Positions 11,077-28,879 of a stretch of DNA of 64,000 bases are shown one piece after another; the stretch's first letter is position 1; each line of letters begins with the position of its first letter. A model generated the notes under the pieces. It was not told the origin of the DNA. It was given only the letters and a program-made list of their open reading frames with translations, and did not search any database. Position numbers and translations under genes: made by a program. Where the stretch lies: IMG/VR virus record IMGVR_UViG_3300034050_000451, positions 62,001 to 126,000 of that record, one strand, 5' to 3'.

Positions 11077-12717
11077 TTAAATAGAAGCTAAATCTTTAAC
11101 AAAAATACGACCGTAGTACTCAGGACGAACCATTTTCTTAGCGTATCTTGTCATTACACCTCTACGAGGAGTAAAGTTTGTTGGGTCATACACCAAAGGA
11201 GTCATAATTAATGGAACGTATGGTGCGTAAACAGCTCCAGTTTCCAAGAAGTTTGAACCTCTGAATCCTAACAAGATTTCGTTTGAAGTCATGTAAGGGT
11301 TTTTGTAAACAGTGTATCTATTAGCGATAGCACCAACTTGCGTTACACCAGCTGCGAAAGATGCAGAATCCTTATCAGCGTTCACTGTAAATGCAGGAAT
11401 CGATTCTAAGATAGTACATACATCAGGAGAAGCAACAACGAAGTTAGCTCCACCTCTTAATGTCAATTGGTGAATTTTGTTAGATACTTTGTTTAATTTA
11501 GTACCTAAAGTTTGGAACCAAGTATTCTTTTGGTAAGCCATTCCAGTTGCTGCTCCAGACCATACGCCTGATGCTGCATTGTATTCTTCACCAATAGTTG
11601 CTGACCAATACTCAGTAGTTAAAGCGTTTGATTTTAACATATCTAAGATTTCTAAGTCAATCTCTAAAGAGATATAATCAGATAACATAGAAGTTAATTC
11701 CGCTTCAGCGTCAATTGAGTGGTAAGCGTTCAAATCTTGCGCCAATTCAGGAGTCCATACTGCTTTCAACTTACGAGTCTTAGCAACGATAGCCTCTGAT
11801 TTCAATTCTAAGTCAACCTCAGGAATATCGATATCAGTTCCGATTGTTCCTTCAGTATCTGCTCTTTTACCAGAGTTTTTACCATCTTCAAAATCACCTC
11901 TAGAGTAATCATTTGGTACAACTGAGTAAGTTAATACTACAGTTTGTGCAGCAGTTTTAGCAGTTTGTAAACCAGCAGATGCTGATACGAACATTACTAA
12001 GTTAGCTCCAGATACTTTGTGGAATTGATTTAAGTTAGTAAGTGAACCACTTGCTACGTTAAATGAACGTACACCATCTAAATCAGCTGTTGTTGGAGCT
12101 GTGAAAGTTGCTTTATGCACTTGTCCAGCTGCTACAGAAGCAGAAAGTTCAGATGTAAATCCTACATCAGCCCAAGATGCTGAAGTATAAGTGATTGCAG
12201 AGTGAGCGAAAGATGCAGTTACATCATTTACTGTGTATCCGAATCTACCTTCACCATATAAACCATTTTCAGCTACTGCAGTAGTACCGAAACCAGCACC
12301 AGCAGCAGAATCTTGTCCGTTACCACCAAAAAGTGATTTTCCAGAGAAAGTTGGGTTACCACCTTGAGCAGTACCATATTTGAAATCCAAATAGAATACA
12401 AGTCCAGAAGGTAAGTTCATAGGTTGTACACTAACGAATTCTTTAGAAGCAATCTCACCGAAGATTCTTCTTACTAAAGGTAAAGCTACACCGCTCCACT
12501 CTTCAGAGTTTGCACCAACACCAGTTTGTGTTGCTTCATCAAGCAATTGTTTTGCTTGGTTTTCCAAAAGTACAGCCATTGCACTTTGGTCTTTTGTCTT
12601 TAAGCCTTCAAGAAGTCCAGTTTTTTCCCATTTTGATTTAAGTTGACGAGTTTCGTTCAACATAACCGATTGTGGGTTCTTTCCTTCCATTAACTTAGAT
12701 AAATCGAAATTTGCCAT
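11077..12717 (-). CDS. gp23: Major capsid protein (T4 gp23-like)
   Basis: VSVQPMNLPSGLVFYLDF, AKTRKLKAVWTPELAQDLNAYHSIDAEAEL, YAPYVPL and PRRGVMTRYA. Confidence 0.97.
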   Translation of the reverse strand: MANFDLSKLMEGKNPQSVMLNETRQLKSKWEKTGLLEGLKTKDQSAMAVLLENQAKQLLDEATQTGVGANSEEWSGVALPLVRRIFGEIASKEFVSVQPMNLPSGLVFYLDFKYGTAQGGNPTFSGKSLFGGNGQDSAAGAGFGTTAVAENGLYGEGRFGYTVNDVTASFAHSAITYTSASWADVGFTSELSASVAAGQVHKATFTAPTTADLDGVRSFNVASGSLTNLNQFHKVSGANLVMFVSASAGLQTAKTAAQTVVLTYSVVPNDYSRGDFEDGKNSGKRADTEGTIGTDIDIPEVDLELKSEAIVAKTRKLKAVWTPELAQDLNAYHSIDAEAELTSMLSDYISLEIDLEILDMLKSNALTTEYWSATIGEEYNAASGVWSGAATGMAYQKNTWFQTLGTKLNKVSNKIHQLTLRGGANFVVASPDVCTILESIPAFTVNADKDSASFAAGVTQVGAIANRYTVYKNPYMTSNEILLGFRGSNFLETGAVYAPYVPLIMTPLVYDPTNFTPRRGVMTRYAKKMVRPEYYGRIFVKDLASI

Positions 12718-14328: not shown

Positions 14329-15465
14329 TTATTTTTTTAATTTTAAACTTCTTTGTGCGTTGGTTAAACCATCAATGATTGATTGCAATCCCCCCTTAAC
14401 ACCATCAGTATCTTTATCTTTAACTCTCTTATCTAAAATCTTTGTATTCATTTTTAAAAAGTTAATGATTGCATTTTCAACTGCGCTCCATCTAATTTCT
14501 TCTTCATTTACCGATTCATTCTTTTGGTGAAGTTTGATTGTAAGTCTTTGATTTGGATTACCATCGTGTCCAACCAATGCACTAACAAAATTCATTTTAC
14601 CTTGCAAGTTTGCTGATTTAATACTTTTGAAAAGTTTTACACCATCCAAATTATGTTTATCAATAAAGGCTTGAACCGCATCACCTCTTGTAGCAGTTAA
14701 TGCTGCAATTCCCATTGCTTCTTTACCAGCACCTTCAGTTACTACTGATTCTCTTTTATCAAGCTCAAAGTATATTCTACTTTTAACTTTTTGGAATGTA
14801 TCAGCTGCTAACTTAGCGTTACCAGTAAATCCCATCTCCAATCCAATTTCTTTTGAACGAATACCTTTTTTAGCCAATGCCATTATTTGAGCTGCTACTG
14901 GTTTAGAAACTACTTGAGTTGGTGTATCAACGTGAATGATATGTTTGAATGCCTCAGTTACTACTGATTCTAAATATACATATTTACCATCAAATGATGC
15001 TGCTATTTTTTTTGAATTTAAAAAATCTGCTGCTTTTTTAGCATTGTTTGGTGAATCATAAACCATTGCACCATCATCTTCTACCATTTTAAATCCCTTA
15101 TGAATACTACCCATATGTTTAGCAACTTCAGGAGATAACGATTCTTTAATAATATTCTCCATTAATCCAATTGCAATATCTTTAACTTCTCTTTCTGCAC
15201 CAGCTGCATATTTCTTATTTACAATTGCAATAGTGTTTCCAGATACTTTAATTCTATACATCGGTATCATTGAAGTTGAGAAATCATACTTTACACCAAT
15301 TTTCTTTAATTCAGAACCAACGTTCATAAATGATGATGCGTTTTTAACTGCTGCTTCAATTTTATCTAAATCAGCATCGTATCTTCCTTCGTTTACTGAT
15401 TCTATTTCTGAAAGAACTGATTCTTTCATAGTTTCTCTTACTATTTTTCTTAATTGCTCTTTCAT
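14329..15465 (-). CDS. Putative internal head protein, modular, with ESVxxE/ESVNE linkers
   Basis: Modules separated by ESVNE, ESVVTE (twice) and ESVNE; located in the head cluster. Confidence 0.65.
   Translation of the reverse strand: MKEQLRKIVRETMKESVLSEIESVNEGRYDADLDKIEAAVKNASSFMNVGSELKKIGVKYDFSTSMIPMYRIKVSGNTIAIVNKKYAAGAEREVKDIAIGLMENIIKESLSPEVAKHMGSIHKGFKMVEDDGAMVYDSPNNAKKAADFLNSKKIAASFDGKYVYLESVVTEAFKHIIHVDTPTQVVSKPVAAQIMALAKKGIRSKEIGLEMGFTGNAKLAADTFQKVKSRIYFELDKRESVVTEGAGKEAMGIAALTATRGDAVQAFIDKHNLDGVKLFKSIKSANLQGKMNFVSALVGHDGNPNQRLTIKLHQKNESVNEEEIRWSAVENAIINFLKMNTKILDKRVKDKDTDGVKGGLQSIIDGLTNAQRSLKLKK
14735..14971. repeat. 18-bp exact direct repeat TCAGTTACTACTGATTCT at 14735-14752 and 14954-14971
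   Basis: Both copies encode the ESVVTE linker and are 219 bp (73 codons) apart. Confidence 0.85.
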
Positions 15466-15467
15466 AA

Positions 15468-16016
15468 TTATTTTTTTCCTAAACGTTCTTTTACAATTTC
15501 ACCATCTAAATCAGAAATTTCATAGTATCTATTTAATATGTTACCCATATCTTCATAAAGTGAATGTAATCTCTCATCTAACTGTCTTGCTTCAGTTGCA
15601 ACCTTTTCAAATGCTTTATCCATTTTATCTAACTCACTCATATTTCTTTTGATGGTTACTTTATCAAACCAATCATCAGCTTCAGAAAGTGTTAGGGTTT
15701 TAGCAGCTTCTACGATTCCACCCAAAGTTTCAGCTACCTCAACGATATCTGAATTTCTTTTCATTTGCTCTTGGAATGTTTTATAAGTTGAAATAATTTC
15801 TAAGAAGTGTTTTTTAACTTCGTTTGATAATGGTCTATTATCTTCTAATGATTCAGCTATACTGAATTTACCATTAACTATTTTTACTTCATTGATATTG
15901 GTTTTACGAATATCATTATATCCCTTAGATACGTTATTACCACCCTTTTGTTCTACTTTTAAAGTAAAGGTGTTATTTGTTACATAATCGTATATGTCAA
16001 AGTTTTTCTTGCTCAT
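15468..16016 (-). CDS. Hypothetical head-associated protein
   Basis: Helical 182-aa ORF coupled to the prohead protease gene. Confidence 0.65.
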   Translation of the reverse strand: MSKKNFDIYDYVTNNTFTLKVEQKGGNNVSKGYNDIRKTNINEVKIVNGKFSIAESLEDNRPLSNEVKKHFLEIISTYKTFQEQMKRNSDIVEVAETLGGIVEAAKTLTLSEADDWFDKVTIKRNMSELDKMDKAFEKVATEARQLDERLHSLYEDMGNILNRYYEISDLDGEIVKERLGKK

Positions 16017-16603
16017 TATATTAATCCTGTTATGATTTCTCTCATTAAATCTTGTGCTTTACAAAATTCACCACAAACATCAGTACCAATAGATTTAACT
16101 ACCGATTCGTTCATAGGTGTCATAAATGCACCATGCGTAGATGGATTGGAAACAAAATCCCAACCGATTAATTCAAAGTCCTCTTGAACTTCTACTTTAT
16201 TTCCTTCTAATTGTCTAGTAGAACCCATACCTCTTGATGAGATACCTAATAGGATTCCAGCTCTTAACAATTCTTTTAATATGTTTCCAGATGGTGTTGG
16301 TAAGATTTCAACTGTACCACATAAATCATTACCTTCCCAATGAATTTCTCTCACATTATGAGATACGTTCTTCAAGTTGATTACAGACGAATCAGGGTGG
16401 TCTAATTCACCTAATGCTCGTCTTTCTTTGATAAGTGTTTCATATCTCTTTGCTTCTCTTTGTAAGATTGGCATTGGATATACTCTACCATTTTGGTTTT
16501 CCGCCCCAGCTCTTTGTAGGATTCCTTTAACGATAGTTCTACCAGAGGCATCTTCGTTAACTAATCCCTTAAACAAATTCGTTTCTATTATTAAGCTTTT
16601 CAT
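16016..16603 (-). CDS. gp21: Prohead core protease (T4 gp21-like)
   Basis: NQNGRVYP, ALGELDHP, GISSRGMGS and DFVSNPS motifs. Confidence 0.95.
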   Translation of the reverse strand: MKSLIIETNLFKGLVNEDASGRTIVKGILQRAGAENQNGRVYPMPILQREAKRYETLIKERRALGELDHPDSSVINLKNVSHNVREIHWEGNDLCGTVEILPTPSGNILKELLRAGILLGISSRGMGSTRQLEGNKVEVQEDFELIGWDFVSNPSTHGAFMTPMNESVVKSIGTDVCGEFCKAQDLMREIITGLI

Positions 16604-16628
16604 ATCTGCTCCTCTTATTATTTATGGA

Positions 16629-17732
16629 TTAATTTATTGATTTGAATTTAGGATAGCCCCTACCCTCAACAAATTTAAAACCATTTTGTTTTTTCATACT
16701 ACCTAAAAACAAATCTTTGTAGTATATTTCAACATACGCATATCCAGTTACTTTACAAATATGTTCAGCTGCTTTAATTGCGCTTTCCAATGTAGTAGCC
16801 AAAAAGTTTGTTTCTCTTTCGGTATTTCTTTGATTGGAATCCGTATAGAAATCAAACATAAATCTTTTTTTAACGTCTGCTGCTTCATTAAATGTATCAG
16901 TTTCAGAATTTACATTCTCTTCCAATCCAAATGGCTTTAACCAATTAATCCAATTTTTTGTAATCCAATTAGTTCTATTTTGTGGAGATACTGTCCAATA
17001 CTTTTTATATATAGATTTAAATACCGGAATTAAACTACTATTTTTAAAACCTGCAATACCAGACCATCCTTGTCCACCTCTAACTGCTTGTAAAAAATCA
17101 CTATCATCCTCATAATATTCCATTGAGTTGGATAATATATCTACCAATGCTAACATTGATTTATCATTACCAATTGCTTCGTTAACTGATTCTTTGATTA
17201 CAACGATTCCGTTTTCATCACCTCTTTTAGCAGTTTTAATACCACCATCAATATCACCTAAACGATGTCTTACTTTTTTTGAACCCTTTGTATTACCATT
17301 TTTATCAGATGGAACGAATGTTGCTGAAATACTATCCATATCTACAACTTTATAATACTTCCCACCATCTATTCCCTTTAATCGGGTGAATCCTTGTCCT
17401 AATATTACAGAACCGATTTTTAAATCAGTTGGATATGATGCTTCATCTACTTTTTTACCAGCTCTTAAATCTGCTAAATCATCACTACCGATATCACCAT
17501 CTTTATCAACATCTAATTTCTTTTGACCACCAACTAATTCTTCATTCTTTTCACCTCTACCATCCCATGTGGCATCGATTTTATCAAAAAATGCTTTCTT
17601 TTCCTCATCACTCATAGATGGGATAGATTTTCCAGCTTTTTCTAATGCGGCTTTGAAAAATGATTGATACTCCGATTCCTCATTAACGATTGTACGAAGT
17701 GTTTCTTTTAGTTTTGCTCTAGTAATATTCAT
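16629..17732 (-). CDS. Putative internal head protein, modular, with an EF-hand-like DxDxDG loop
   Basis: LVGGQKKLDVDKDGDIGSDDL; modules separated by VDE, ESVNE and FNE. Confidence 0.6.
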   Translation of the reverse strand: MNITRAKLKETLRTIVNEESEYQSFFKAALEKAGKSIPSMSDEEKKAFFDKIDATWDGRGEKNEELVGGQKKLDVDKDGDIGSDDLADLRAGKKVDEASYPTDLKIGSVILGQGFTRLKGIDGGKYYKVVDMDSISATFVPSDKNGNTKGSKKVRHRLGDIDGGIKTAKRGDENGIVVIKESVNEAIGNDKSMLALVDILSNSMEYYEDDSDFLQAVRGGQGWSGIAGFKNSSLIPVFKSIYKKYWTVSPQNRTNWITKNWINWLKPFGLEENVNSETDTFNEAADVKKRFMFDFYTDSNQRNTERETNFLATTLESAIKAAEHICKVTGYAYVEIYYKDLFLGSMKKQNGFKFVEGRGYPKFKSIN

Positions 17733-17747
17733 AGTATAGGTTTCCTA

Positions 17748-18197
17748 TTATAGTTTGCTAATTGATGTAGCAATATTGTTTAATCTCTCTCTTATTCTGA
17801 ATAAGTTTGATTTAGTTCTTTTCCAATATTGGTCAGAGTTTAAATCACCTTCATTTTTAATCTTACCATACCAACCAAGGAATGTTTCGATTTCAGAAAG
17901 TTGTCTATTAACATTAGAAATTCCTCTACCAATTTTTTGTTTTGGAGAGGATTCATCTTTTCTTAATTCATGCCAACGATTTTCATCAACTTTTTTATAT
18001 CCAGTTGATTGATTTATTCTTTTTGTAATTGCATCATCTGGTTCAGCTTCTTCATCAGTACCATCCGTTGCTTTGAATGCATTGGGAGTATTGTATCCAG
18101 CTACATCACCAGTTGTTGTTGCTTCACCTAACTCTAACTCCTCTTGCTGAATCTCTTCTAAAAGTTCATCAATTAGTTCTCTTAGTTTACTTGTCAT
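17748..18197 (-). CDS. Hypothetical head-associated protein
   Basis: LGE-ATTTGDVAGYNTPNAF motif; head cluster. Confidence 0.65.
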   Translation of the reverse strand: MTSKLRELIDELLEEIQQEELELGEATTTGDVAGYNTPNAFKATDGTDEEAEPDDAITKRINQSTGYKKVDENRWHELRKDESSPKQKIGRGISNVNRQLSEIETFLGWYGKIKNEGDLNSDQYWKRTKSNLFRIRERLNNIATSISKL

Positions 18198-19065
18198 TTA
18201 ATCTACCCTTTAGTTCTTTAATTAATTCGTATGATATCATTAATGATGATACGTGATTATCAGAAACAGTCTTACCAATTTTAGTTTTATTTAAAACAGA
18301 TACAGTCTCAGCTAATTTAATTTTAGTAACTTTGTCATTGATAGACTTATGTAATACTTTTAATTCTTTTACTATTGATGGAATTTCCTTCTCAACGTAT
18401 TCTTTAAATTTAGTAGTATTGGTAATATTATTAATAAACTGCTTTAATAATTCTTTTTGACTTTCATCTAAATTAGAATATTTTTTATTAAACGTTTCTA
18501 CTAATATTTTGTAGGTAAGTAATCTTAAATCTTTATCTTGTTTTTTATAAGATTCTACTAATTTCTGAGCATCATCTGATTTTTCTACAATTACTGTTTG
18601 ATTCGATGTTATATTTTCAATTAAAGTAATTTTAGAATTAAAAATATCTTTAACATCATAATCTACCATATTCTTAGCTTCAAATACTTTATATATTGAT
18701 GCTAATACTTTATAGTTAGTTATTGGAGATGATAAGAAATCATCCATATCGAATGATTCATTAATCTTCTTAATAAGATTATATTTTTCTCTTTGTAATT
18801 TACTTTGATTGATACGGGTATGCGCTTCATTGATTGTATCAATAAATTTTTCAGCTCTGGATTCTGACTTATATTTCTCCTTTAGTAAGAGTTCATATAA
18901 TCTATGTTCTTTATTCAATTCAGTTTTTGGTGAAAAGAATTCTCTAACAATATGCTTTGCTTTTTCAGTCGCATCTCCATTAAGCACTTCTAATGTAATT
19001 TGCCTTACAAGAAGTTCAAATAGAATACCTGTGTTCTTAAATTTCGAATGTTTTACCTTCTTCAT
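18187..19065 (-). CDS. Conserved hypothetical protein next to portal
   Basis: 292-aa helical ORF (KHSKFKNTGILFELLVRQIT) with a late-type promoter. Confidence 0.65.
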   Translation of the reverse strand: MKKVKHSKFKNTGILFELLVRQITLEVLNGDATEKAKHIVREFFSPKTELNKEHRLYELLLKEKYKSESRAEKFIDTINEAHTRINQSKLQREKYNLIKKINESFDMDDFLSSPITNYKVLASIYKVFEAKNMVDYDVKDIFNSKITLIENITSNQTVIVEKSDDAQKLVESYKKQDKDLRLLTYKILVETFNKKYSNLDESQKELLKQFINNITNTTKFKEYVEKEIPSIVKELKVLHKSINDKVTKIKLAETVSVLNKTKIGKTVSDNHVSSLMISYELIKELKGRLNDK

Positions 19066-19113
19066 TTATTTTTGTCCTATAATAATATATTCATAAACGA
19101 TGTAATCATTGTG

Positions 19114-19121
19114 TATAAATA
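19114..19121 (-). promoter_or_regulatory. Putative phage late promoter (TATTTATA)
   Basis: Recurrent motif in the intergenic gap. Confidence 0.55.
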
Positions 19122-19132
19122 TAAGTTTTAAT

Positions 19133-20902
19133 TTATTTACTAATTTTTTCCTCGTCTAACAAATTTGAATCATCTAAAAAGTCAACTTTTTCTTTTATAA
19201 TTTGTTTTTTTGATGATATTCCGTTAATGTATTCTTTTGCAATATTTGCATTAACTCTAACCGCTGAACTTTCTCTTTTCAGAGCTTTTTGGTTTTCTTT
19301 AGCTCCTAATGGGTCTCTACCATAAGGATGTTTATCTTTACCATAAGTATTACCCTCTCTTGGTCTACCACCTTCATCCTTTAATTCCGTTTTAAGTTTT
19401 TCCAAACTTTCTTCGATATCAGTTGGTTGTTGTGGCATTGCCGGGTCATTTCCTTCGTTTTCAATAGCGTTATATCTGAATCTATCTTTGAGGTCATTTA
19501 TCATTCCAGCTTTTTGTTGGTCTACCTCATCTTTACTCATATTGAATATATTTTCATATGCCCAATCTTTAGAAATCATATTTAATGCATTGATATCAGA
19601 AACTAATCTTACTTTCTCACTCCAAAGGTTTACTTTCTCTTGCTCATAGATTGTAGATGGATTTACCAATGATAATTCAAAATCAACCATATCAGCATCT
19701 TCGATACCTTGAGATGCTAAATGTACAATTGCCAATTTAGTAAGTTCGGATACCAATGTTCTTTGGATTCTCTCAATCGTTCTTGCAAATCTTACATCTT
19801 CTGCAGCAAGTGTTGCTTTACCATTTACATTCTCATCATACCCCAAATATGCTTTTGGAATTTTAAGAGCTGCAAACAATTTGTTTTTTAAGTAATCAAT
19901 ATCTTCAATAGCTGTGTATTGTAATCCACCTAATGAATCAATTTGAGTACCACTATCACCACCCCTAACAGGTAAGAAGAAATCTTCAGTTAAGTTTTGG
20001 ATATTATATTTTAAGTTATAATCACCACTATTCTTATCAACAAATGGAACTTTCTTCATTTTGTTGATAATCTTTTGCATGTAGTTATCCACTTCGTTTG
20101 GTGGAATATTACCAATATCAATTTTGAAAACTCTCTTATCCGGTGCTCTCATAATTCTATGAATTAACATAGCATCTTCCATAAGAGAAACTTGTTTCCA
20201 AATTCTTCTACCATTTTCAATCATTGCCTTACCATAAGGTAAGAAGTTGGTATCTGATAATAATCTAAAGTGTACTACTTCATAGTTCTCATATTCACCT
20301 TTTCCAATAGGGTCATGATTAACTTTGAACTTAACATAGTTTGGATTATTTGGGTCAGTATTTTCCAATCTTTCAGTTTCATAAACTGGAAGTGGTTGTA
20401 CATTAATAATACCATTACCTGGTTGTATTTCCACCGAAAGGAAAAAATCACCATACTTAACCATATTACGAGTCCATGCCCATAGGTTAAATTCAATATT
20501 TAAAATATCATAGAAAAGATTTTCTAATAATGCTTTTACTTTTTCGTTTTGAGTTTTGATTTGAATTACATCTCCAAATTCATTCTTTAATGTAGATTCA
20601 TCTGAGTATATATCTAATGCCGATGATATAATCGGGTCATTATCCATAGCATCATAATCTCTAAATAATTCTCTACGAACTTGATGGTATGCCATTGACT
20701 GTGCAGCCATTTGGTCACCAGCAAATCCTCTTTGTAATTTAGTGTACCTATCTCTAAGGTTCAATAAATTAGTACTTCCTTGCTGTCTGTCATCAACATC
20801 AACTACTTTTCTCTTCCCATCCTTGTCAATTTTGACTACGGCTTGAGTAGAAAAGAGTTTTGTTAATCTTTGAAAAAACGTACTTTGTTGTTGTTCTGCC
20901 AT
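19133..20902 (-). CDS. gp20: Portal protein (T4 gp20-like)
   Basis: MEDAMLIHRIMRAPDKRVFKIDIGN, EDFFLPVRGG and LFAALKIPK; start moved to MAEQQQ (20902) to avoid overlapping the upstream gene. Confidence 0.95.
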   Translation of the reverse strand: MAEQQQSTFFQRLTKLFSTQAVVKIDKDGKRKVVDVDDRQQGSTNLLNLRDRYTKLQRGFAGDQMAAQSMAYHQVRRELFRDYDAMDNDPIISSALDIYSDESTLKNEFGDVIQIKTQNEKVKALLENLFYDILNIEFNLWAWTRNMVKYGDFFLSVEIQPGNGIINVQPLPVYETERLENTDPNNPNYVKFKVNHDPIGKGEYENYEVVHFRLLSDTNFLPYGKAMIENGRRIWKQVSLMEDAMLIHRIMRAPDKRVFKIDIGNIPPNEVDNYMQKIINKMKKVPFVDKNSGDYNLKYNIQNLTEDFFLPVRGGDSGTQIDSLGGLQYTAIEDIDYLKNKLFAALKIPKAYLGYDENVNGKATLAAEDVRFARTIERIQRTLVSELTKLAIVHLASQGIEDADMVDFELSLVNPSTIYEQEKVNLWSEKVRLVSDINALNMISKDWAYENIFNMSKDEVDQQKAGMINDLKDRFRYNAIENEGNDPAMPQQPTDIEESLEKLKTELKDEGGRPREGNTYGKDKHPYGRDPLGAKENQKALKRESSAVRVNANIAKEYINGISSKKQIIKEKVDFLDDSNLLDEEKISK

Positions 20903-20933
20903 TTTTGTTTTTGTTTTTATAACCTTTATTAAT

Positions 20934-21341
20934 TTACCAAGCTTTACAACTCCAATACCTTGCTCCTGTTTTTGGACCAGGTGTATCACAATTGTGTCTT
21001 GCTCTAAATGATGCTCTTCGTTCTGGGTCTGATTTTTTAATTCTCATAGTTTCTTCACCTGCTGATTTTGCTGATGTTCCGCCATGCCCAAAATTTACTT
21101 TTACAACATTCCCTTTTGGATTGTTAACATATACTTTAAACTTCTTAACATCACCTCTCATCGGTTTATTGAGTTTTACCTCTCTTCCCTGATATTCGGC
21201 TTCGTTAACTTCCCCCTTTATGGTTTTTAAGAATTCTATGAATTCTTTTAAATCATCGTAGTTTTCAACATAATATTCAGTAACATCTTCTTCGAAAATG
21301 CCTCTGATTTCATTGTAAAGTTCTAAAGTATAATTTTCCAT
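20934..21341 (-). CDS. Conserved phage head-associated protein
   Basis: VNE-AEYQGREVKLNKP...KVNFG...SFRARHNC...ARYWSCKAW domain, common in T4-like phages. Confidence 0.7.
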   Translation of the reverse strand: MENYTLELYNEIRGIFEEDVTEYYVENYDDLKEFIEFLKTIKGEVNEAEYQGREVKLNKPMRGDVKKFKVYVNNPKGNVVKVNFGHGGTSAKSAGEETMRIKKSDPERRASFRARHNCDTPGPKTGARYWSCKAW

Positions 21342-21402: not shown

Positions 21403-22989
21403 TTATAACCATTTACTTAAATCTTCAATACTACCATCCCCAACGTTCATTTGCCAAGGATTACTATCCATATCGTTACCACCATAAACACCACTATAAG
21501 TATATGATGATATACTGTTAATAGCTTGTTTTGTTAAATCAATACCCTCTTGTCTTAATCTAAGTGATGTATCTCTAACCCAAAGTGATATGGCTAATGC
21601 CATCGTAAGGTCATCATTATAACCACGCATTGCCTCAGCTCTACCATTGTTCCAAATGAATGTAAATAACTCATCTATGGTTCTTACTGAACGGATTATG
21701 ATTGATTTTTCTCTTACATACTCCTCCAACTTTGAAATAATCAAAGGTCGGGTTCTTGATGTGGTTGAGAATCCAGCTACCATACTTCTATCCTCCGAAC
21801 GATATTTGTTTGATAATTGATTATCCACATCCACATATTTTAAATCTCGAGATGTATAATACAAATTAGTATATCCCCTATCCAATACTTGTTGAATAGC
21901 TGCCCAACCAATATTTGCGTTTTCAATTACCAATAGTGCGTTGTTATATTCGGTTGCTAATGATACTAAGAAATTTCCAAAATCCTTTGTATCCAACTTA
22001 CCTCTATATTCTGCTACTTGCGCAGATGCTTCAACATCAATAACGTGTGCGGTAGAGTAATCCGAAGAATCTCCCCTCGAAACGTCAGCTGATACTATGT
22101 AAGTTTTATTATAGTTAGGATATTCCCATCTCCAAAGGTTTCCATCAAATCCACCTTTTTCTACTGGGTCTTGCACAAATGTTTCTTTATAAAATTGTAG
22201 GAGTTGTGGTTCGATTACACTATCTCCAGAAGATACGAAATCACAATCACACTCTTGAGCTGCTCCCTTTGTTCCTAATAGAACCTCTTGTTCATCTCGC
22301 CAAGCTTGCTCTCTTTCAGGATGTACACTCCAATGGATTCTAATATTATTAAATGAGTTTGTTCCATCTTCAGAACCTACCCAAGTTTTGTGGAAAAAGT
22401 TTCCAACACCATTTGGTGTAGAAAGGATAATTGCGTTACCCCCAGTTGATAATGTAGATTGTGCAGATACCCATATATCTTCAATCTTATCGATAAATGC
22501 CGCCTCATCAAATACTAATAAAGATAGTGCTTCAGAACGACCAGCATCACTAGCAGCAGATGTTGCTTTGATTTGAGAGCCGTTTGCATATCTAAGTGAT
22601 AATTTGTTATCCTCCACCGTTGTTAGTTTTAACCAACTTGGTAGATATTGATTCATAACCCTTACCTTAGTTACTAAGTTTTTAGCAACCTCTTGCTTTG
22701 TTGCAATAACCAATACGTTAAAATCATCATTAAATAGCATTTTCCAAAGTGAGAAACCAGCAGTCAATGTTGAGATACCAGTTTGTCTTGATTTTAGAAT
22801 AATATTATAACGATGGTCTTTAAACTGAGTTAGTGTATCTTCTTGAAACGGAAAAAGGTGAAAGGGTATTTTACCTTTCACCGGATGTTGAATCATACAA
22901 TATTTTCGCATGAAGTATATCGGGTCTTTTGCACACTTTTGATATTCTTCAGCAATAATTTGTTTTAATGATTTCTTTACTTCAGCCAT
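21403..22989 (-). CDS. gp17: Terminase large subunit (T4 gp17-like)
   Basis: Walker A KSRQTGIST, Walker B LLVFDEAAF, STPNG, and nuclease motifs ADVSRG...DYS and NDDLTMA. Confidence 0.95.
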   Translation of the reverse strand: MAEVKKSLKQIIAEEYQKCAKDPIYFMRKYCMIQHPVKGKIPFHLFPFQEDTLTQFKDHRYNIILKSRQTGISTLTAGFSLWKMLFNDDFNVLVIATKQEVAKNLVTKVRVMNQYLPSWLKLTTVEDNKLSLRYANGSQIKATSAASDAGRSEALSLLVFDEAAFIDKIEDIWVSAQSTLSTGGNAIILSTPNGVGNFFHKTWVGSEDGTNSFNNIRIHWSVHPEREQAWRDEQEVLLGTKGAAQECDCDFVSSGDSVIEPQLLQFYKETFVQDPVEKGGFDGNLWRWEYPNYNKTYIVSADVSRGDSSDYSTAHVIDVEASAQVAEYRGKLDTKDFGNFLVSLATEYNNALLVIENANIGWAAIQQVLDRGYTNLYYTSRDLKYVDVDNQLSNKYRSEDRSMVAGFSTTSRTRPLIISKLEEYVREKSIIIRSVRTIDELFTFIWNNGRAEAMRGYNDDLTMALAISLWVRDTSLRLRQEGIDLTKQAINSISSYTYSGVYGGNDMDSNPWQMNVGDGSIEDLSKWL

Positions 22990-24406: not shown

Positions 24407-27400
24407 CTATTCGTAAAATAATCCAAGAATTTGATTTAATGGTGCAAATGTACCTGTTAGTTTCATTGTATTTCCATTGTACACAAATACGATACCTTCG
24501 TTTGGAACTATTTTATCTTTTCCACCAATAGCGTTTAATCTTTGTAATTCCATTTTAAGTTTTGCTATCTTCTTTTCATCACCACCAGTCTTAACATCTG
24601 ATATAGTTTTATCTAATCTATCCTTCATAGCTCTAACCGCAGAATCAGGGTTTGCTGTAAGTACTGAACTCATAAATGAAAGTACTTCAGAGCCAACACC
24701 CAAAAATATATCCTCAAAAGGTCTAATATTATCCTTTGCTATCTTAGCGTGGTCATTCTTATCAATACCAGTTGCCCAACTTAATACTTTAGCATCGGTA
24801 ATGTTTTTATTGTCTAAACGGAATGATTTATCATAGAATGCCCATCTCTTAACCAATCCCATTAGAGTTCTATTATCAATCGGAGATGGTGATTTCTTAG
24901 TTACAAAATCAGTCCACCATGCTTGATGATAATCAGCAATACCATCCGTATCGGATAGTTTAAACTTAGATTGTAGTTTTGTAATCTGTCCACTATATTT
25001 TCCTTTTAATGAAGTTAAGTTTTTTGATTGTGGTAACTTAACAACTGGAGGTCCTTGTATTGTATAAGCCGATTGTACGTTTTGATTTACTTGCTTAATC
25101 ATACCAGCCAAAACTTTAGCTGCTTCTTGATTTTCACCAATTGCTATACCAGCTTCATTATATTCCATTGTTCCATGAAATACTAATAGTGCTTGTCCAT
25201 AAGGAATTACATTTACCGAAGTTGGATATATTACCTCCAAATTCATAAAACATGCACCATTCTTAAAAACTTTTTCTCTTTGTTTTTCTGAAAGTGATTT
25301 TATTGCTTTTGATAAATCACTCATAGCAAAGTTGTATGCTTTTTCTAACTCACCTCTTCCGGCAAACTTAGTAGCTACTCCATTTATATCCAATGCCTTC
25401 TCACCTCTATTAGCTAGATGTCCTTTGTTTCTAGCAGCAACTAATCTTCCATTCACCCAACTGATTGCTAATGCTTGTCCATCAGTTTTTTCTCTTGTCA
25501 ATTCCAACTTACCTTCTAATGCACGATTCACAATATCTTTAAGTTGTCCAAATGTTAAGTTAATTTCAGTATCAAATGGATGATTCATATGTCCATACGC
25601 ACCACCTTCAGTTAATAACCCCTCAGTTATGTTTGGGTTATTATCAGTTCCACATTTGTGACACATATAGGTATCACTTCCACCTTCAGAAATTTTCCAA
25701 CTCCAACCACAATTATCACAAATTACTTTACCATTTTCTACTCTTTCACTAATCCCACCACCCAATGCGTATGGTTCGTTATATTGTAATTTCTCAGCGT
25801 TAAATTTCTTTCTTAATCTTTTAAGAACTTCTTTATGTTTATCAATCCATGCTTGGTCTGGGTAACCCATTCCAATTCCTTCAAATGCTGATTTGGTTTT
25901 TACTTTATACCAACCACCACCCGGTGTTCTGAATATTCTTGCAGGTATTTCTAATATTCCATTTGATGGTAATTTAGAATGATACTTTGAATCAATATGA
26001 ACAACCTTTACAATGAATACTTTTTTCTTATTATCAGCTCCAATCAATTCAACTTCTAATGGAACTGCTACTCCACCTATTTTAAGTTTACCACCAAAGA
26101 TATTACCTTTAGTGTATGCTTCTTCTACTGATTTTTTAACCATTTCATATCCTTTATCTTCGGTATCCTTTGTATTTGTTTGATGACCAGGTTCTGTTTT
26201 TTTACTATCATCAAAATCAATTGTATCCAATTCTGCACCATATCCCATATCAGGTGTATATGTTCCCGATTTGTGATGTTGTAAAAAATTATGGTCTATT
26301 GTACCATCCGATTTATGATTTTTTGAATTAATATTTTCATTTTTACTTATTTCAATTGCTCTTAATTGCTTAAGTGCTTTCTCTTTAGTATCATGTGTTC
26401 CTAATCTATCACCACCATCCTTTGGATATACCACCCACTTACCATCAATATGTTTGATTGTTTCAACAGTCAATTTCATTGATTCTTTGCTTCTAAAATC
26501 TCTAGTTCCACCTTTATTATCTTTAAATCCGAATGATTTATAGAATTGGATTAATCTTCCCTTAGAACCCCCAAAATCAGATGATGGAGTTAAGAATACA
26601 TCTTTTTTGGTTTTCTTTGCATAAGTAATAATATCATTCATTACTTTTGTACCAATACCCTCACTTCTTTTTTCTTTTGGAACAACTATTCTGTGAATTT
26701 CTAAGTATTCTGGATATTCATATACATCCAATTCCACACCATGTTTTTTCCCCAAATGAGAGTCTAACGTTTCAGCAATTACTGATTCAAATTTATATTC
26801 AGGTGTTGTTGTTTTGAATTCACCTTTTCTCATTATAGTTTTTGCAATAGCTTTATTAGCTTGAAGCATAAATGGTATATTGATATTAGTTCTATTATCC
26901 TTTGCTACAACTTGGTTGTATTGAGTTAAGAATTCAACAAATTTCTTTTTATTTCTACCTAATCTTTTAAAGAACCCAGTTAGTTCTGCTGCTGATATTT
27001 CCTTACCATTTCTCGTATCATTTAATCTATCGAAAAAATGTTTATCAGTAAGAACGATATCAATTGGATTTAATTGTCTATCAGCGTATTTATCAATTTG
27101 TTGTAAATCAGCCATTGGGATTTCGTTAATTACCGATTCGTTTTTACCAGTATCTGCTTTTTTAGCAGCAACACCAATTTCTTCTGCAAATTTATTTGAC
27201 ATTGGTATCACATCCTTTATATCGGCATCAATAACAATAACTTTCATATTAGCAGGTTTCCCATCTCTAATTGCGTTTGTTGTTACAGCTGCCCAACGAT
27301 GATGACCATCCACTACATATCCATCTCTACTTACATAGATTGGAGCAGTAATCTTTGGATGATTCGGGTCATTCTCTAATGCCTTTGCCATACCAGCTAC

Positions 27401-28879
27401 CTTTGCACCAACTAATTCAGATTGAGTTGCTTTTAGAGAATCCGATGGTAATTCAGTTTGGATAGTTTTAATACCCTTTCTTTTCAATAGTTCTCTAAAC
27501 ATTGGTTCCGTATCAACTTCACCATTTATATCTTTTTCCATACTTGCCGCAGGTGAACCTTCGGTTGGTTTGCCTTTAAATTGTGGCATTTCCTCACGAG
27601 GAATTCCAGCATTACCAGCACAATATAAGTTTGTTCCAGCTACAGTTATTTTACATAAATTGTAATTAGGAGCTGCTTCACCATTTTCTTTTGCCTGATT
27701 TGTTAGTTGAACCAACTTATCAATCTGCATTGAAATTTCTCTTTGTTGCTTATTTGAAATTTTAGGAATATCCGATTCTGAACTAAATGTATCTGAATCT
27801 GCTTTTGGTAATACCTTAGTTACATTATCTAATGCAACATTTGGTATTTCAGTTTTGGGTTTTTCTTTTTGCTTAACATCAGGTGCATGTTTAAACATAT
27901 CCGAACCGGCTACTTTAGTTCCTTTAGATGGTTCCGATTTTGTATCACTAGCTCCATCTATTTTAACATACTTACCACCATCATTCTTTGAAAAAGATGG
28001 AGAAGATTCATCATCCTCTTTACCTTTTTGTTTATACACACCATGTCCAATATGAGTGTATTTGGAATCATCATTTTCATCTTCAAAGATTACTTGATAT
28101 CCTTCCTTTATCATTCTAAAAGTTGCTACCTTTTTACCATTGATAGTTGGCATTCCATGTTCATCTTTTCCAATAGTTTTTACAATAACTTTTTTATTTT
28201 TAAATCTACCCATTAAAATGGTATCTCCGATTTCAACATCTAATGTAATACCTTCATCTAAATTAATTGATTCTGGTAATTTGGAAAGTTTATCAACAAC
28301 CATATCAAAAATTGATTGATTGAATTTACCATAAGCTTTCTTTACAAAGAAATCTTTTTTATCCTCAGTACTACCTTTTTTTAAACCAATCCTAACATCA
28401 GTACCACTAATTGCATTTGGTTGTGCTGGTGATATAAAAACATACCCCCTATCAGCATATCCTTCCAATTCAATACTATCTTTGTATTTTTCAAAATACT
28501 TCCCACCCAAACGACTTGAATCTTTCTCACCAACCACAGTTATAAATGCAGTAGTTTCTTTATTGAATTTGCTTAGGATTTCAGTTGGAGCATAGGGATT
28601 TTTGACCTGAGCTATTTTGTTTGATGGGATACCAAACATAGTGGTCATTACCTTTACTTTCTCCTTAAAATTGAATGGGGATTTTTGATTGTCTGTTTTA
28701 TCAGAGGTTCCGATATAAACATTATTTTTTCCAAACTTTTTTACTAATGTTTGGTAAGTAGCGAAGTGCCCTTTATGAAAAGGTTGAAAGCGACCAGAGT
28801 AAACAACAACTAAGTCCTTTACACTGCTCGCTTCTCCTAATAATATACTCTCTACTAAAAACTTTGATAAATCACTCAT
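24407..28879 (-). CDS. Multidomain (polyvalent) protein: HIGH nucleotidyltransferase, ParB/Srx-like, GNAT, Zn-ribbon and ATP-dependent ligase-like domains
   Basis: GRFQPFHKGH; VVDGHHRWAA; VPKEKRSEGIGTKVM...FYKSFGF; CDNC...CHKC; EKTDG...EGIVF...MKLTG. Confidence 0.8.
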   Translation of the reverse strand: MSDLSKFLVESILLGEASSVKDLVVVYSGRFQPFHKGHFATYQTLVKKFGKNNVYIGTSDKTDNQKSPFNFKEKVKVMTTMFGIPSNKIAQVKNPYAPTEILSKFNKETTAFITVVGEKDSSRLGGKYFEKYKDSIELEGYADRGYVFISPAQPNAISGTDVRIGLKKGSTEDKKDFFVKKAYGKFNQSIFDMVVDKLSKLPESINLDEGITLDVEIGDTILMGRFKNKKVIVKTIGKDEHGMPTINGKKVATFRMIKEGYQVIFEDENDDSKYTHIGHGVYKQKGKEDDESSPSFSKNDGGKYVKIDGASDTKSEPSKGTKVAGSDMFKHAPDVKQKEKPKTEIPNVALDNVTKVLPKADSDTFSSESDIPKISNKQQREISMQIDKLVQLTNQAKENGEAAPNYNLCKITVAGTNLYCAGNAGIPREEMPQFKGKPTEGSPAASMEKDINGEVDTEPMFRELLKRKGIKTIQTELPSDSLKATQSELVGAKVAGMAKALENDPNHPKITAPIYVSRDGYVVDGHHRWAAVTTNAIRDGKPANMKVIVIDADIKDVIPMSNKFAEEIGVAAKKADTGKNESVINEIPMADLQQIDKYADRQLNPIDIVLTDKHFFDRLNDTRNGKEISAAELTGFFKRLGRNKKKFVEFLTQYNQVVAKDNRTNINIPFMLQANKAIAKTIMRKGEFKTTTPEYKFESVIAETLDSHLGKKHGVELDVYEYPEYLEIHRIVVPKEKRSEGIGTKVMNDIITYAKKTKKDVFLTPSSDFGGSKGRLIQFYKSFGFKDNKGGTRDFRSKESMKLTVETIKHIDGKWVVYPKDGGDRLGTHDTKEKALKQLRAIEISKNENINSKNHKSDGTIDHNFLQHHKSGTYTPDMGYGAELDTIDFDDSKKTEPGHQTNTKDTEDKGYEMVKKSVEEAYTKGNIFGGKLKIGGVAVPLEVELIGADNKKKVFIVKVVHIDSKYHSKLPSNGILEIPARIFRTPGGGWYKVKTKSAFEGIGMGYPDQAWIDKHKEVLKRLRKKFNAEKLQYNEPYALGGGISERVENGKVICDNCGWSWKISEGGSDTYMCHKCGTDNNPNITEGLLTEGGAYGHMNHPFDTEINLTFGQLKDIVNRALEGKLELTREKTDGQALAISWVNGRLVAARNKGHLANRGEKALDINGVATKFAGRGELEKAYNFAMSDLSKAIKSLSEKQREKVFKNGACFMNLEVIYPTSVNVIPYGQALLVFHGTMEYNEAGIAIGENQEAAKVLAGMIKQVNQNVQSAYTIQGPPVVKLPQSKNLTSLKGKYSGQITKLQSKFKLSDTDGIADYHQAWWTDFVTKKSPSPIDNRTLMGLVKRWAFYDKSFRLDNKNITDAKVLSWATGIDKNDHAKIAKDNIRPFEDIFLGVGSEVLSFMSSVLTANPDSAVRAMKDRLDKTISDVKTGGDEKKIAKLKMELQRLNAIGGKDKIVPNEGIVFVYNGNTMKLTGTFAPLNQILGLFYE

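Follow-up and report, generated by a model that had tools for sequence, protein, structure and literature searches.

Head-cluster proteins of a lake-water jumbo phage and of its many uncultured relatives are built as strings of unrelated small modules joined by one conserved five-residue linker, which fits the cutting rule published for T4 gp21, the family to which the phage's own head protease belongs, and which is also the exact DNA point where modules are swapped between phages. We analysed a 64,000-nt window (positions 62,001 to 126,000 of IMG/VR record IMGVR_UViG_3300034050_000451; coordinates below count from its first nucleotide), in which all of the genes described here lie on the minus strand. 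In 58 related viral contigs and more than 1,000 database proteins the same joint links at least 78 unrelated module families. Its consensus is ES(V/I)NE, encoded by GAATCAGTAAACGAA. The modules have a median length of 77 aa, are mostly basic and occur in different orders and numbers in three or four gene slots around a T4 gp21-type prohead protease. A first-pass annotation had noticed ES(V/I)xxE linkers between the modules of a 378-aa protein and an exact 18-bp repeat at two of them, and this observation is confirmed and is far stronger than one window shows.

The 378-aa protein (p378, 14329-15465), which matches no Pfam or PHROG family, consists of a 26-aa leader followed by five cassettes of the module families F04, F13, F10, F07 and F01, as resolved by module decomposition against the 58 related loci. 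The leader (15388-15465) contains ESVLSE at residues 15-20 and ends in ESVNE at residues 22-26 (15388-15402), which is encoded by the exact consensus GAATCAGTAAACGAA. It is conserved in close relatives while the downstream cassettes vary, and we propose it as a capsid-targeting propeptide. Cassette F04 (residues 27-107; 15145-15387) is an alpha/beta domain and is the only part of the AlphaFold2 model of p378 with a pLDDT of about 85, the model being poor overall (mean pLDDT 49.5). It is followed by a degenerate joint, ESLSPE (residues 108-113; 15127-15144), at which relatives have ESVKE or ESIIE followed by (S/G)LS.DVAKHM. Cassette F13 (residues 114-165; 14971-15126), a family also found in the p367-slot gene of the related loci L012 and L016, ends at ESVVTE (residues 166-171; 14953-14970). 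Cassette F10 (residues 172-238; 14752-14952) looks like a helix-turn-helix domain, although the Atlas structural look-alikes are HTH domains at TM 0.55-0.63 only, which is weak evidence, and in L034 and L038 this cassette sits inside the p149-slot gene. A second ESVVTE (residues 239-244; 14734-14751) precedes cassette F07 (residues 245-316; 14518-14733), whose family heads a separate post-protease gene in L013, L036 and L049-L056. The last linker, ESVNE (residues 317-321; 14503-14517), is encoded by GAATCGGTAAATGAA and precedes cassette F01 (residues 322-378; 14332-14502), a basic helical hairpin with model helices spanning residues 324-350 and 354-377. F01 is the commonest family, with 27 seed copies in different slots and positions.

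Three details of the first-pass annotation require correction. The modules, which had been given as 60-80 aa in length, are about 81, 52, 67, 72 and 57 aa, and the first two are joined by the degenerate joint. The exact 18-nt direct repeat TCAGTTACTACTGATTCT at 14735-14752 and 14954-14971, which had been equated with the two ESVVTE linkers, is 17 nt of the ESVVTE codons plus one upstream base. Finally, close relatives have ESVNE at residue 166, so the second ESVVTE copy is a recent change in this genome.

The genome is AT-rich (29-36% G+C) and short direct repeats of 14-20 nt are common in the region, which could suggest chance or compositional repeats in Lys/Glu-rich proteins. However, among all ORFs of 50 aa or more in the 270,865-bp genome ES[VI]NE occurs only four times, three of which are in p378 and the neighbouring p367 gene, while the fourth is in another joint-bearing protein of 395 aa outside the window. 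Of the 120 best database relatives of p378, 117 carry ES[VILM]NE, some up to 6 times, and one relative (L053, 4975-7434) has 9. The motif recurs at module boundaries across hundreds of relatives, and a chance origin is thereby refuted.

Decomposition of 106 distinct proteins from the 58 loci gave 254 modules of 78 families, which appear in many orders in a p149 slot (F02, 0-4 cassettes, F03), a p367 slot (F05 plus cassettes) and a post-protease slot (F06 plus up to 9 cassettes). A word search found 1,069 proteins, typically 75-99% identical over only 15-40% of p378. Profile-profile comparison of the 19 larger families found 168 of 171 pairs unrelated, the 3 related pairs being leader variants or fusions. 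The modules match almost no known family and have no recognisable function.

Several lines of evidence place cassette exchange exactly at the linkers. Near-identical gene pairs (97-100% nt) differ by indels of 150, 180, 180, 369, 186 and 180 nt, each flanked on both sides by the 15-17 nt linker. Of the nucleotide HSPs of the p378 CDS against distant loci, 68 of 69 start at a joint, with about 40 starting at CDS positions 934-957, around the last linker, and both nucleotide and protein HSPs start at residues 105-107, next to the degenerate joint. Protein HSP starts pile up at residues 18-24, 106, 165-169, 238-242 and 315-319. Lake metagenome contigs switch to other cassettes at 14510, 14742 and 17180, each inside a linker and each with a different upstream module, and at 15379, 9 nt downstream of the first linker. 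Nucleotide homology of 82-96% begins and ends at linkers even between phages whose portal and capsid proteins are only about 50% identical, and reaches 96% over a single cassette. F04 is 81-92% identical at the amino acid level and up to 96% at the nucleotide level in loci whose portal is only 48-62% identical, and F01 is 83-94% identical at the amino acid level in phages whose portal is 46-58% identical; for F01 and F04 taken together we find 83-94% identity where portal, capsid and protease proteins are 46-70% identical. Modules are thus gained, lost, reordered and moved between genes and between distantly related phages at the linkers. The first-pass annotation had named a lack of coincidence between linkers and module boundaries in relatives as grounds for rejecting its reading, and the boundaries clearly do coincide.

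The linker is conserved at the DNA level beyond what the peptide requires, and its codons are far more uniform than the genes' own usage. In 67 distinct junction types, Val is GTA in 55 of 57 cases (background 41%), Asn is AAC in 50 of 67 (34%), Ser is never AGY (22%) and Glu is GAA in 133 of 134 (83%), with binomial p values ranging from 6e-8 to 3e-19, and information content falls to about zero outside the 15 nt. The uniformity could partly reflect shared descent of the linkers, since the junction types are not fully independent, and a 15-nt identity is short for ordinary homologous recombination. Uniform codons and a sharp end of conservation would also be expected if the 15-nt sequence were the target of a dedicated site-specific recombinase or nuclease, like an integron attC or a homing site, with an incidental peptide. 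We consider this very unlikely, because the variants that do occur are almost all synonymous or conservative (TCA/TCG/TCT/TCC, AAC/AAT, and GTA to ATA, Val to Ile) and the joint is always in frame, so the peptide is under selection. Moreover, no recombinase was seen in the head cluster, the only part of the genome screened for one.

The gene at 16016-16603 encodes a prohead protease of the Peptidase_S77 (T4 gp21) type (Pfam 2e-25; phrog_207 1.7e-50). It aligns to T4 gp21 (5JBL) with His in GELDHP and Ser in ISSRG opposite the positions mutated in the crystal, indicating that the catalytic residues are retained. T4 gp21 cuts after L/I-X-Glu, removes 10-aa capsid-targeting leaders from internal proteins and processes itself (PMC9026906). 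The joints fit this rule of a hydrophobic residue, any residue, then Glu, and the residue following the predicted cut (P1') is mostly Ala, Glu, Gly or Ser. However, the rule is short and common, so that a fit is weak on its own, and the conserved Glu-Ser at P5-P4 is not part of the T4 rule and is unexplained. Candidate self-cleavage sites in the protease are LIIE 4-7 (16583-16594), LVNE 14-17 (16553-16564) and PMNE 163-166 (16106-16117). The sites are conserved in 29 protease homologues, in which LLIE before Thr lies at the N-terminus and a hydrophobic-Asn/Gln-Glu site, similar to the joint, lies at the conserved C-terminal junction (MNE in the window). The major capsid protein, of gp23 type by PDB sequence match, has a predicted propeptide site, LLDE-61 before Ala (12535-12546), and QLL(D/S)E followed by Ala is invariant in 7 homologues and in Flavobacterium phage immuto and Microcystis phage Mel-JY01.

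It is possible that the arrays act uncleaved, as intact beads-on-a-string head or ejection proteins in which the pentapeptide is only a conserved hinge and recombination site, since phage polyvalent proteins of 2-15 domains are packaged, some of them unprocessed, such as the N4 virion RNA polymerase (PMC5512222). This appears unlikely, as hinges between unrelated domains are not normally an invariant pentapeptide, whereas this one ends in exactly the residues that the adjacent protease family requires and recurs at the protease's own junction. Furthermore, degenerate joints keep the hydrophobic-X-Glu core and lose the rest.

We therefore favour, with reasonable confidence, the view that these genes encode in-frame arrays of small cargo proteins for the capsid interior, a polyprotein version of the T4 internal-protein arrangement. 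Each array starts with a conserved, mostly acidic head piece (the p378 leader, F05 in p367, F02 in p149, F06 in p182), which we propose takes the precursor into the scaffolding core of the prohead, and behind it come one to nine unrelated, mostly basic modules of 50-140 aa, separated by ES(V/I)NE or a degenerate hydrophobic-X-Glu joint. During head maturation the gp21-type protease would cut after the Glu of every joint and free the modules as 6-16 kDa proteins, which would stay with the DNA and probably enter the host with it. In this view recombination between the joints, kept nearly invariant as DNA, deletes, inserts, reorders or imports whole modules within a gene, between genes and between co-infecting phages, and preserves the reading frame and the processing site each time. 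Our data demonstrate the architecture, the unrelatedness of the modules, the exchange of cassettes with breakpoints at the joints, the DNA-level conservation of the joint and the presence of an intact S77 protease, while cleavage at the joints, targeting by the head pieces, retention in the virion, delivery into the host and the roles of the modules are inferred, without direct evidence. The interpretation given in the first-pass annotation, that the linker is both a maturation site and a recombination micro-homology in a plug-in system for small capsid-packaged proteins, is accordingly partly supported, the recombination half being borne out and the protease half being well motivated from sequence alone.

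The properties of the modules are cargo-like, since 53 of 78 families have a pI above 8 whereas the head pieces F02, F05, F06 and F27 have pI 4.6-5.7, and this matches T4 internal proteins, which are basic, about 8-20 kDa and injected (PMC9026906, PMC12373910). An alternative is that the arrays are prohead-core proteins like T4 gp67, gp68 and gp22, cut at the joints into fragments that leave the head before DNA packaging, so that the modules would matter only for assembly or head size. In its favour, p292, p149 and p367 lie between the portal and protease genes, where T4 has genes 67 and 68, the head pieces are acidic like scaffold proteins, and in T4 most core fragments exit the head (PMC9026906). 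We regard this as possible but unlikely, because cassette content differs freely between near-identical phages and cassettes are exchanged between lineages with about 50% identical capsids, a pattern of accessory, arms-race genes rather than of assembly parts, and because most cassettes are basic, domain-sized units. The conserved parts (p292, F02 and F03) could be the true core components. The T4 core proteins occupy a similar position in the gene order, between the portal, protease and scaffold genes, and are cut into several pieces by gp21 (PMC9026906), but there is no sequence match and they are conserved assembly components, not mosaic arrays.

The T4 internal proteins (IPI, IPII, IPIII and Alt) share with the arrays a gp21-type head protease, the hydrophobic-X-Glu rule, a short N-terminal leader removed by the cut, small, basic and mutually unrelated mature products (the cut and its products here by inference), and content that varies strongly between related phages (PMC9026906, PMC3012670, PMC12373910). 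In T4, however, each internal protein is its own gene with its own leader, whereas here many modules share one leader and one reading frame and are separated by a repeated internal cleavage-type joint, which is a longer, near-invariant pentapeptide. No sequence similarity to any T4 internal protein was found in the profile searches. At the T-even internal-protein loci and in the PeSL cassettes of T4-type phages, a short conserved sequence flanking variable units likewise appears to mediate insertion, deletion and replacement of accessory units between related phages (PMC2839356, PMC4122927), but those units are whole genes flanked by non-coding promoter and stem-loop elements, while here the unit is part of an ORF and the flanking repeat is coding, in frame and doubles as the proposed processing site. 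In giant phages (phiKZ gp175, SPN3US gp245 substrates), diverged gp21 homologues cut many head proteins after X-X-Glu, some at several sites, and the protease removes its own C-terminal propeptide (PMC10052503, PMC9026906). There the multiple cuts degrade long propeptides of a single mature protein, and a string of interchangeable mature modules with a uniform joint has not been reported. Polyvalent proteins of phages and conjugative elements (Iyer et al. 2017) are multidomain proteins encoded among virion genes, predicted to be packaged and delivered, with highly variable domain combinations and sometimes proteolytic processing (PMC5512222). They are built from recognisable enzymatic or anti-defence domains and often carry their own peptidase domain, whereas here processing would be by the separate head protease and a uniform linker marks every boundary. 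No cultured phage was found to carry these cassettes, and the nearest isolates, immuto and Mel-JY01, share the gene order but not the arrays.

The joints that the first-pass annotation noted in the 367-aa (p367), 149-aa (p149) and 135-aa (p135) proteins are also present. The p182 gene (15468-16016; F15-F06) is separate here and ends 2 nt before p378, as checked in the junction sequence, whereas in relatives it is the N-terminal head piece of the post-protease polyprotein, with F06(-F67) fused in frame to 3-9 cassettes; F06 has a homologue in Mel-JY01. The p367 gene (16629-17732) encodes a leader ending in IVNE (residues 15-18), F05 with a DxDxDG loop, KVDE (94-97), F21, ESVNE (181-185; 17178-17192), an unclassified module of ~95 aa, TFNE (280-283) and F25. 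Its ESVNE linker is encoded by GAATCAGTTAACGAA and falls in a direct-repeat family (D1) of the region, and F21 and F25 sit behind canonical ESVNE joints in L057 and L058. The p149 protein (17748-18197) has an acidic leader ending in LELGE (21-25) before Ala, a conserved N-terminal part, KVDE-72, which is an empty cassette site, and a conserved C-terminal part. Relatives carry 0-4 cassettes between the same N- and C-terminal parts, and L.E before Ala is conserved after the leader. The p135 protein (20934-21341) has an acidic leader, an EVNE joint (44-47) and a basic C-terminal domain (phrog_7595), and its relatives of 140-388 aa keep an (L/V)NE joint before the same domain and add modules upstream.

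The window is bases 62001-126000 of a 270,865-bp viral record with 29-36% G+C, and its head genes all lie on the minus strand. Running from 22989 down to 11077, the order is the large terminase (21403-22989), p135, a T4 gp20-type portal (19133-20989, Pfam 5.6e-69), p292, p149, p367, a Peptidase_S77 prohead protease (16016-16603), p182, p378, p95, an acidic scaffold protein and a gp23-type capsid protein (11077-12717). The portal ORF as listed starts at a GTG (20989, 618 aa) and overlaps p135, whereas the ATG at 20902 gives a protein of 589 aa, matches the length in relatives and removes the overlap, and is therefore probably the true start. The nearest cultured phages, Flavobacterium phage immuto and Microcystis phage Mel-JY01, share this gene order but differ in the genes on either side of the protease. 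A Bacteroidota host is a guess from the relationship to immuto and one MAG label. In Mel-JY01 an annotated ribosomal protein S21 gene (L002:5141-5368) occupies the variable slot between the protease and scaffold genes, where the window has p182 and p378.

The observation made in the first-pass annotation, that head-cluster proteins carry a recurrent Glu-ended linker with a DNA repeat at two of the joints, holds. In p378 the joints, numbered by their last residue, are ESVLSE-20, ESVNE-26, a degenerate ESLSPE-113, ESVVTE-171, ESVVTE-244 and ESVNE-321, and the two ESVVTE joints lie in an exact 18-nt repeat at 14735-14752 and 14954-14971. The joints named earlier for p367, p149 and p135 are also present. 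In the whole genome ES[VI]NE occurs four times, three of them in p378 and p367. The fourth is in a 395-aa protein outside the window (G000:C1:230330-231517, minus strand), which has INE, ESINE (canonical codons apart from the ATA Ile) and VNE joints, contains the module families F20 and F46 and shares modules with head-slot proteins of relatives. This protein shows that arrays also occur away from the head cluster, as in the related loci L030, L031 and L046. A further large protein of 1490 aa (24407-28879, minus strand) has a cytidylyltransferase-like domain (residues 26-163) and a GNAT domain (residues 722-786) and carries ESVINE at 581 and ESVIAE at 698 between the domains. It is possible that it is an enzyme-bearing member of the same joint system. 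Mel-JY01 has a cytidylyltransferase-like gene at the same end of its head-gene cluster, beyond the terminase.

A scan of viral contigs with p378 returned 58 loci, and their matches began and ended at residues 22-24, 162-169, 238-243 and 314-316, which are the joints. The matching ORFs carry up to 9 copies of ESVNE and read as beads on a string. In order to define the modules, 106 distinct proteins were split at the joints and the pieces were clustered. Single-linkage clustering chained the families together through unsplit segments and was replaced by a coverage-filtered version, which gave 254 modules in 78 families. Of 171 profile-profile comparisons among the 19 larger families, 168 showed no relationship. 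A MAFFT alignment misplaced isolated module fragments along p378 and was not used. A word search of 5.8 billion proteins gave 1,069 hits, all unnamed, of which most are 75-99% identical over only 15-40% of p378, and 117 of the best 120 carry the joint. In contrast, tblastn of p378 and of an 819-aa array against 50,697 phage records found no cassette in any cultured phage, and only F06, the head piece family of p182, was matched, in Mel-JY01.

The same families appear in different orders and in different genes. The p149 slot consists of a constant N-terminal part and a constant C-terminal part with 0-4 cassettes between them; p149 of the window has none and reads KVDE followed by NRW at that point. 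The p367 slot is a constant head piece followed by cassettes, and the post-protease slot is a p182-like head piece fused to as many as nine cassettes, while in the window p182 and p378 are separate genes 2 nt apart. The head piece of p367 (family F05) ends just before the first joint in a DxDxDG loop (17478-17513, residues 74-85, DVDKDGDIGSDD), which resembles an EF-hand or dockerin calcium site. One relative (P0018) has a precomputed Dockerin_1 hit, and the related locus L012 carries the loop unit twice through a 96-nt tandem duplication. In many relatives (P0002, P0007, P0011, L021:3952-6651 and L018:2461-4059) a DUF3008 (PF11450) domain is fused upstream of the p378-type leader or at the start of arrays, and the annotated leader Met is therefore internal in those proteins.

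Comparison of relatives localizes cassette exchange to the joint. Gene pairs that are 97-100% identical at the DNA level differ by indels of 150, 180, 180, 369, 186 and 180 nt, and in every case the extra segment begins with the linker sequence and is followed by it again. Close relatives of p378 (88-95% identical) gain or lose single cassettes at the joints and have ESVNE where the window has its first ESVVTE, so the 18-bp repeat reflects a recent event in this genome. Against distant loci, 68 of 69 nucleotide matches of the p378 coding sequence start at a joint, with identities of 70-96%. The portal, capsid and protease proteins of those same loci are only 46-70% identical to those of the window, while the cassettes F01 and F04 are 83-94% identical, and cassettes therefore move between lineages. 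Protein-level statistics were blunter: HSP ends lay within 6 aa of a joint in 32-44% of cases against 11% at random, and of 20 HSP-inferred indels 7 had both ends at a strict joint and 18 had at least one, against 3% for the null. We therefore rely on the DNA alignments.

A 4.3-kb stretch of the window is found, at 99-100% of sampled words, in 19 lake-water metagenome runs from 2020 to 2025, and this phage genotype thus persists over years. Contigs from those runs and from a related run leave the sequence of the window at 14510, 14742, 17180 and 15379, and each continues into other cassettes whose last residues, as translated by hand, complete a joint (ESMLNE, ESVTE and GINE). Since these are assembled contigs, they show variants but not their frequencies. 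The 270-kb record is much longer than the 160-176 kb contigs of relatives.

The joint is also conserved as DNA. Of 101 ES[VI]NE joints, 45 are exactly GAATCAGTAAACGAA. Across 67 distinct left/right family combinations, Val is GTA in 55 of 57, Asn is AAC in 50 of 67, Ser is never AGY and Glu is GAA in 133 of 134, as compared to a background in the same genes of 41%, 34%, 22% AGY and 83%, respectively. The variants are single third-base changes, or GTA to ATA, and conservation falls to nothing outside the 15 nt. This fits repeated recombination through the joint, or selection for it, although residual shared ancestry among joints cannot be excluded. Three Val-Asn-Glu sites of the window, at the protease N-terminus (16552-16570), the p367 linker (17177-17195) and the p135 joint (21200-21218), are all encoded GTTAACGAA and form a small repeat family that contains the palindrome GTTAAC, whereas linkers of relatives almost always use GTA instead. 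No dedicated recombinase was seen among the genes of the head cluster.

Cleavage at the joints seems likely, though by inference from sequence and by analogy to T4. The protease matches Pfam PF03420 at 2e-25 and phrog_207 at 1.7e-50, and its alignment to T4 gp21 (5JBL) places GELDHP and ISSRG, with the catalytic His and Ser, opposite the mutated catalytic positions of the T4 crystal construct. Published work shows that gp21 cuts after L/I-X-Glu, removes 10-residue capsid-targeting leaders from internal proteins, cuts core proteins into several pieces and is itself processed, with an LIE site near its N-terminus (PMC9026906). In T4 IPIII, changing the Glu to Asp or Gln blocks processing. In this clade LLIE followed by Thr lies at protease residue 7, a hydrophobic-Asn/Gln-Glu site followed by Ser or Gly lies right after the catalytic domain in 29 homologues, and QLL(D/S)E followed by Ala is invariant in the capsid protein. 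The joints show the same preference, all of them ending in (V/I/L)-N-Glu or a hydrophobic-X-Glu variant, and the residue following the proposed cut, a small residue in the gp21-type cleavage motif, is mostly Ala, Glu, Gly or Ser. Cuts at the joints of p378 would give pieces of 3.1, 15.9 (or two smaller pieces), 8.1, 8.2 and 6.4 kDa. Conserved leaders end in a fitting site (ESVNE-26, IVNE-18, and L.E before Ala at residue 25) but have no sequence similarity to the T4 leader. The head pieces are acidic, while 53 of 78 cassette families have pI above 8, with a median length of 77 aa over the families, and these basic proteins of 6-16 kDa match the profile of T4 internal proteins, which are injected and block restriction enzymes (PMC12373910). 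The interpretation offered in the first-pass annotation, that the linker is both a maturation site and a recombination micro-homology for packaged proteins, is thus partly supported: the array architecture, the exchange of cassettes at the joints, the DNA-level conservation of the joint and the presence of an S77 protease with its catalytic residues are shown, whereas cleavage, targeting by the leaders, packaging with the DNA and delivery to the host remain inferences.

The sequences of the modules say little about their function. Pfam and PHROG scans of p378, p367, p149, p182 and ten related arrays gave nothing useful beyond the protease, the portal, DUF3008 and phrog_7595; for the ten arrays Pfam found only DUF3008 and sub-threshold or single-module hits. 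The AlphaFold2 model of p378, built with 25 partly collinear relatives, is poor (mean pLDDT 49.5) and only F04 is confident. A wide fold search returned only generic helical hairpins for F01, at Z of about 8, which is within the noise for helical models, and an Atlas search gave weak helix-turn-helix look-alikes for F10 and nothing clear for F04.

The individual parts of the system are familiar, namely a gp21-type protease, leader-targeted internal proteins and modular shuffling of accessory units in T4-type phages (PMC2839356; the work of Repoila et al. 1994, PMC395341, is cited through PMC2839356 and PMC12373910). Literature searches did not find a description of their combination, in which many unrelated, putative cargo modules sit in one reading frame and one near-invariant coding 15-mer serves as both junction and exchange point. 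In comparison to the T4 internal proteins, which are separate genes each with its own leader, up to 9 modules here share one ORF and one leader, and p378, p367, p149 and p182 have no Pfam or PHROG match that would indicate homology to IPI, IPII, IPIII, Alt, gp67 or gp68. Like polyvalent proteins (Iyer et al. 2017), the arrays hold many domains in one polypeptide among virion genes (2-10 modules per protein, between the portal and capsid genes). However, polyvalent domains belong to known effector or enzyme families, often with the protein's own peptidase domain, while here almost no known family is matched and the protease is a separate gene. In the T-even IP loci, PeSLs and integrons, cassettes are whole genes bounded by non-coding recombination or regulatory elements, whereas the cassettes described here are in-frame parts of ORFs bounded by a coding 15-mer.

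A more far-reaching hypothesis, which we consider about as likely as not, is that the system is a protein-level analogue of an integron. In this view one 15-nt sequence would serve both as the recombination point and, once translated, as the head-protease cut site, and any small protein flanked by it could be dropped in frame into a capsid-loading precursor, be released inside the head and be delivered to the next host. The 78 or more cassette families would then form a shared, laterally traded pool of injected host-takeover or anti-defence proteins in freshwater phages. Capsid-delivered proteins act before any phage gene is expressed, and in T4 all three internal proteins turned out to be specific inhibitors of host restriction enzymes (PMC12373910). 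If the arrays are processed as proposed, they reveal a compact natural way for phages to load, swap and test many such proteins, and they give a catalogue of dozens of unexplored small protein families from abundant lake phages, for which the pentapeptide offers a simple sequence tag for finding more in metagenomes. They would also offer a ready-made design rule (leader, linker, cargo, linker, cargo) for packaging foreign proteins in phage heads, extending the T4 capsid-targeting approach. The arrays also look like a clear case of one short sequence being selected at both the DNA and the protein level.

Sharing of sequence with otherwise unrelated phages is seen in p135, whose basic C-terminal domain (20934-21212, residues 44-135, phrog_7595) is shared at the DNA level (66-82%) with hypothetical genes of Pelagibacter podophages.
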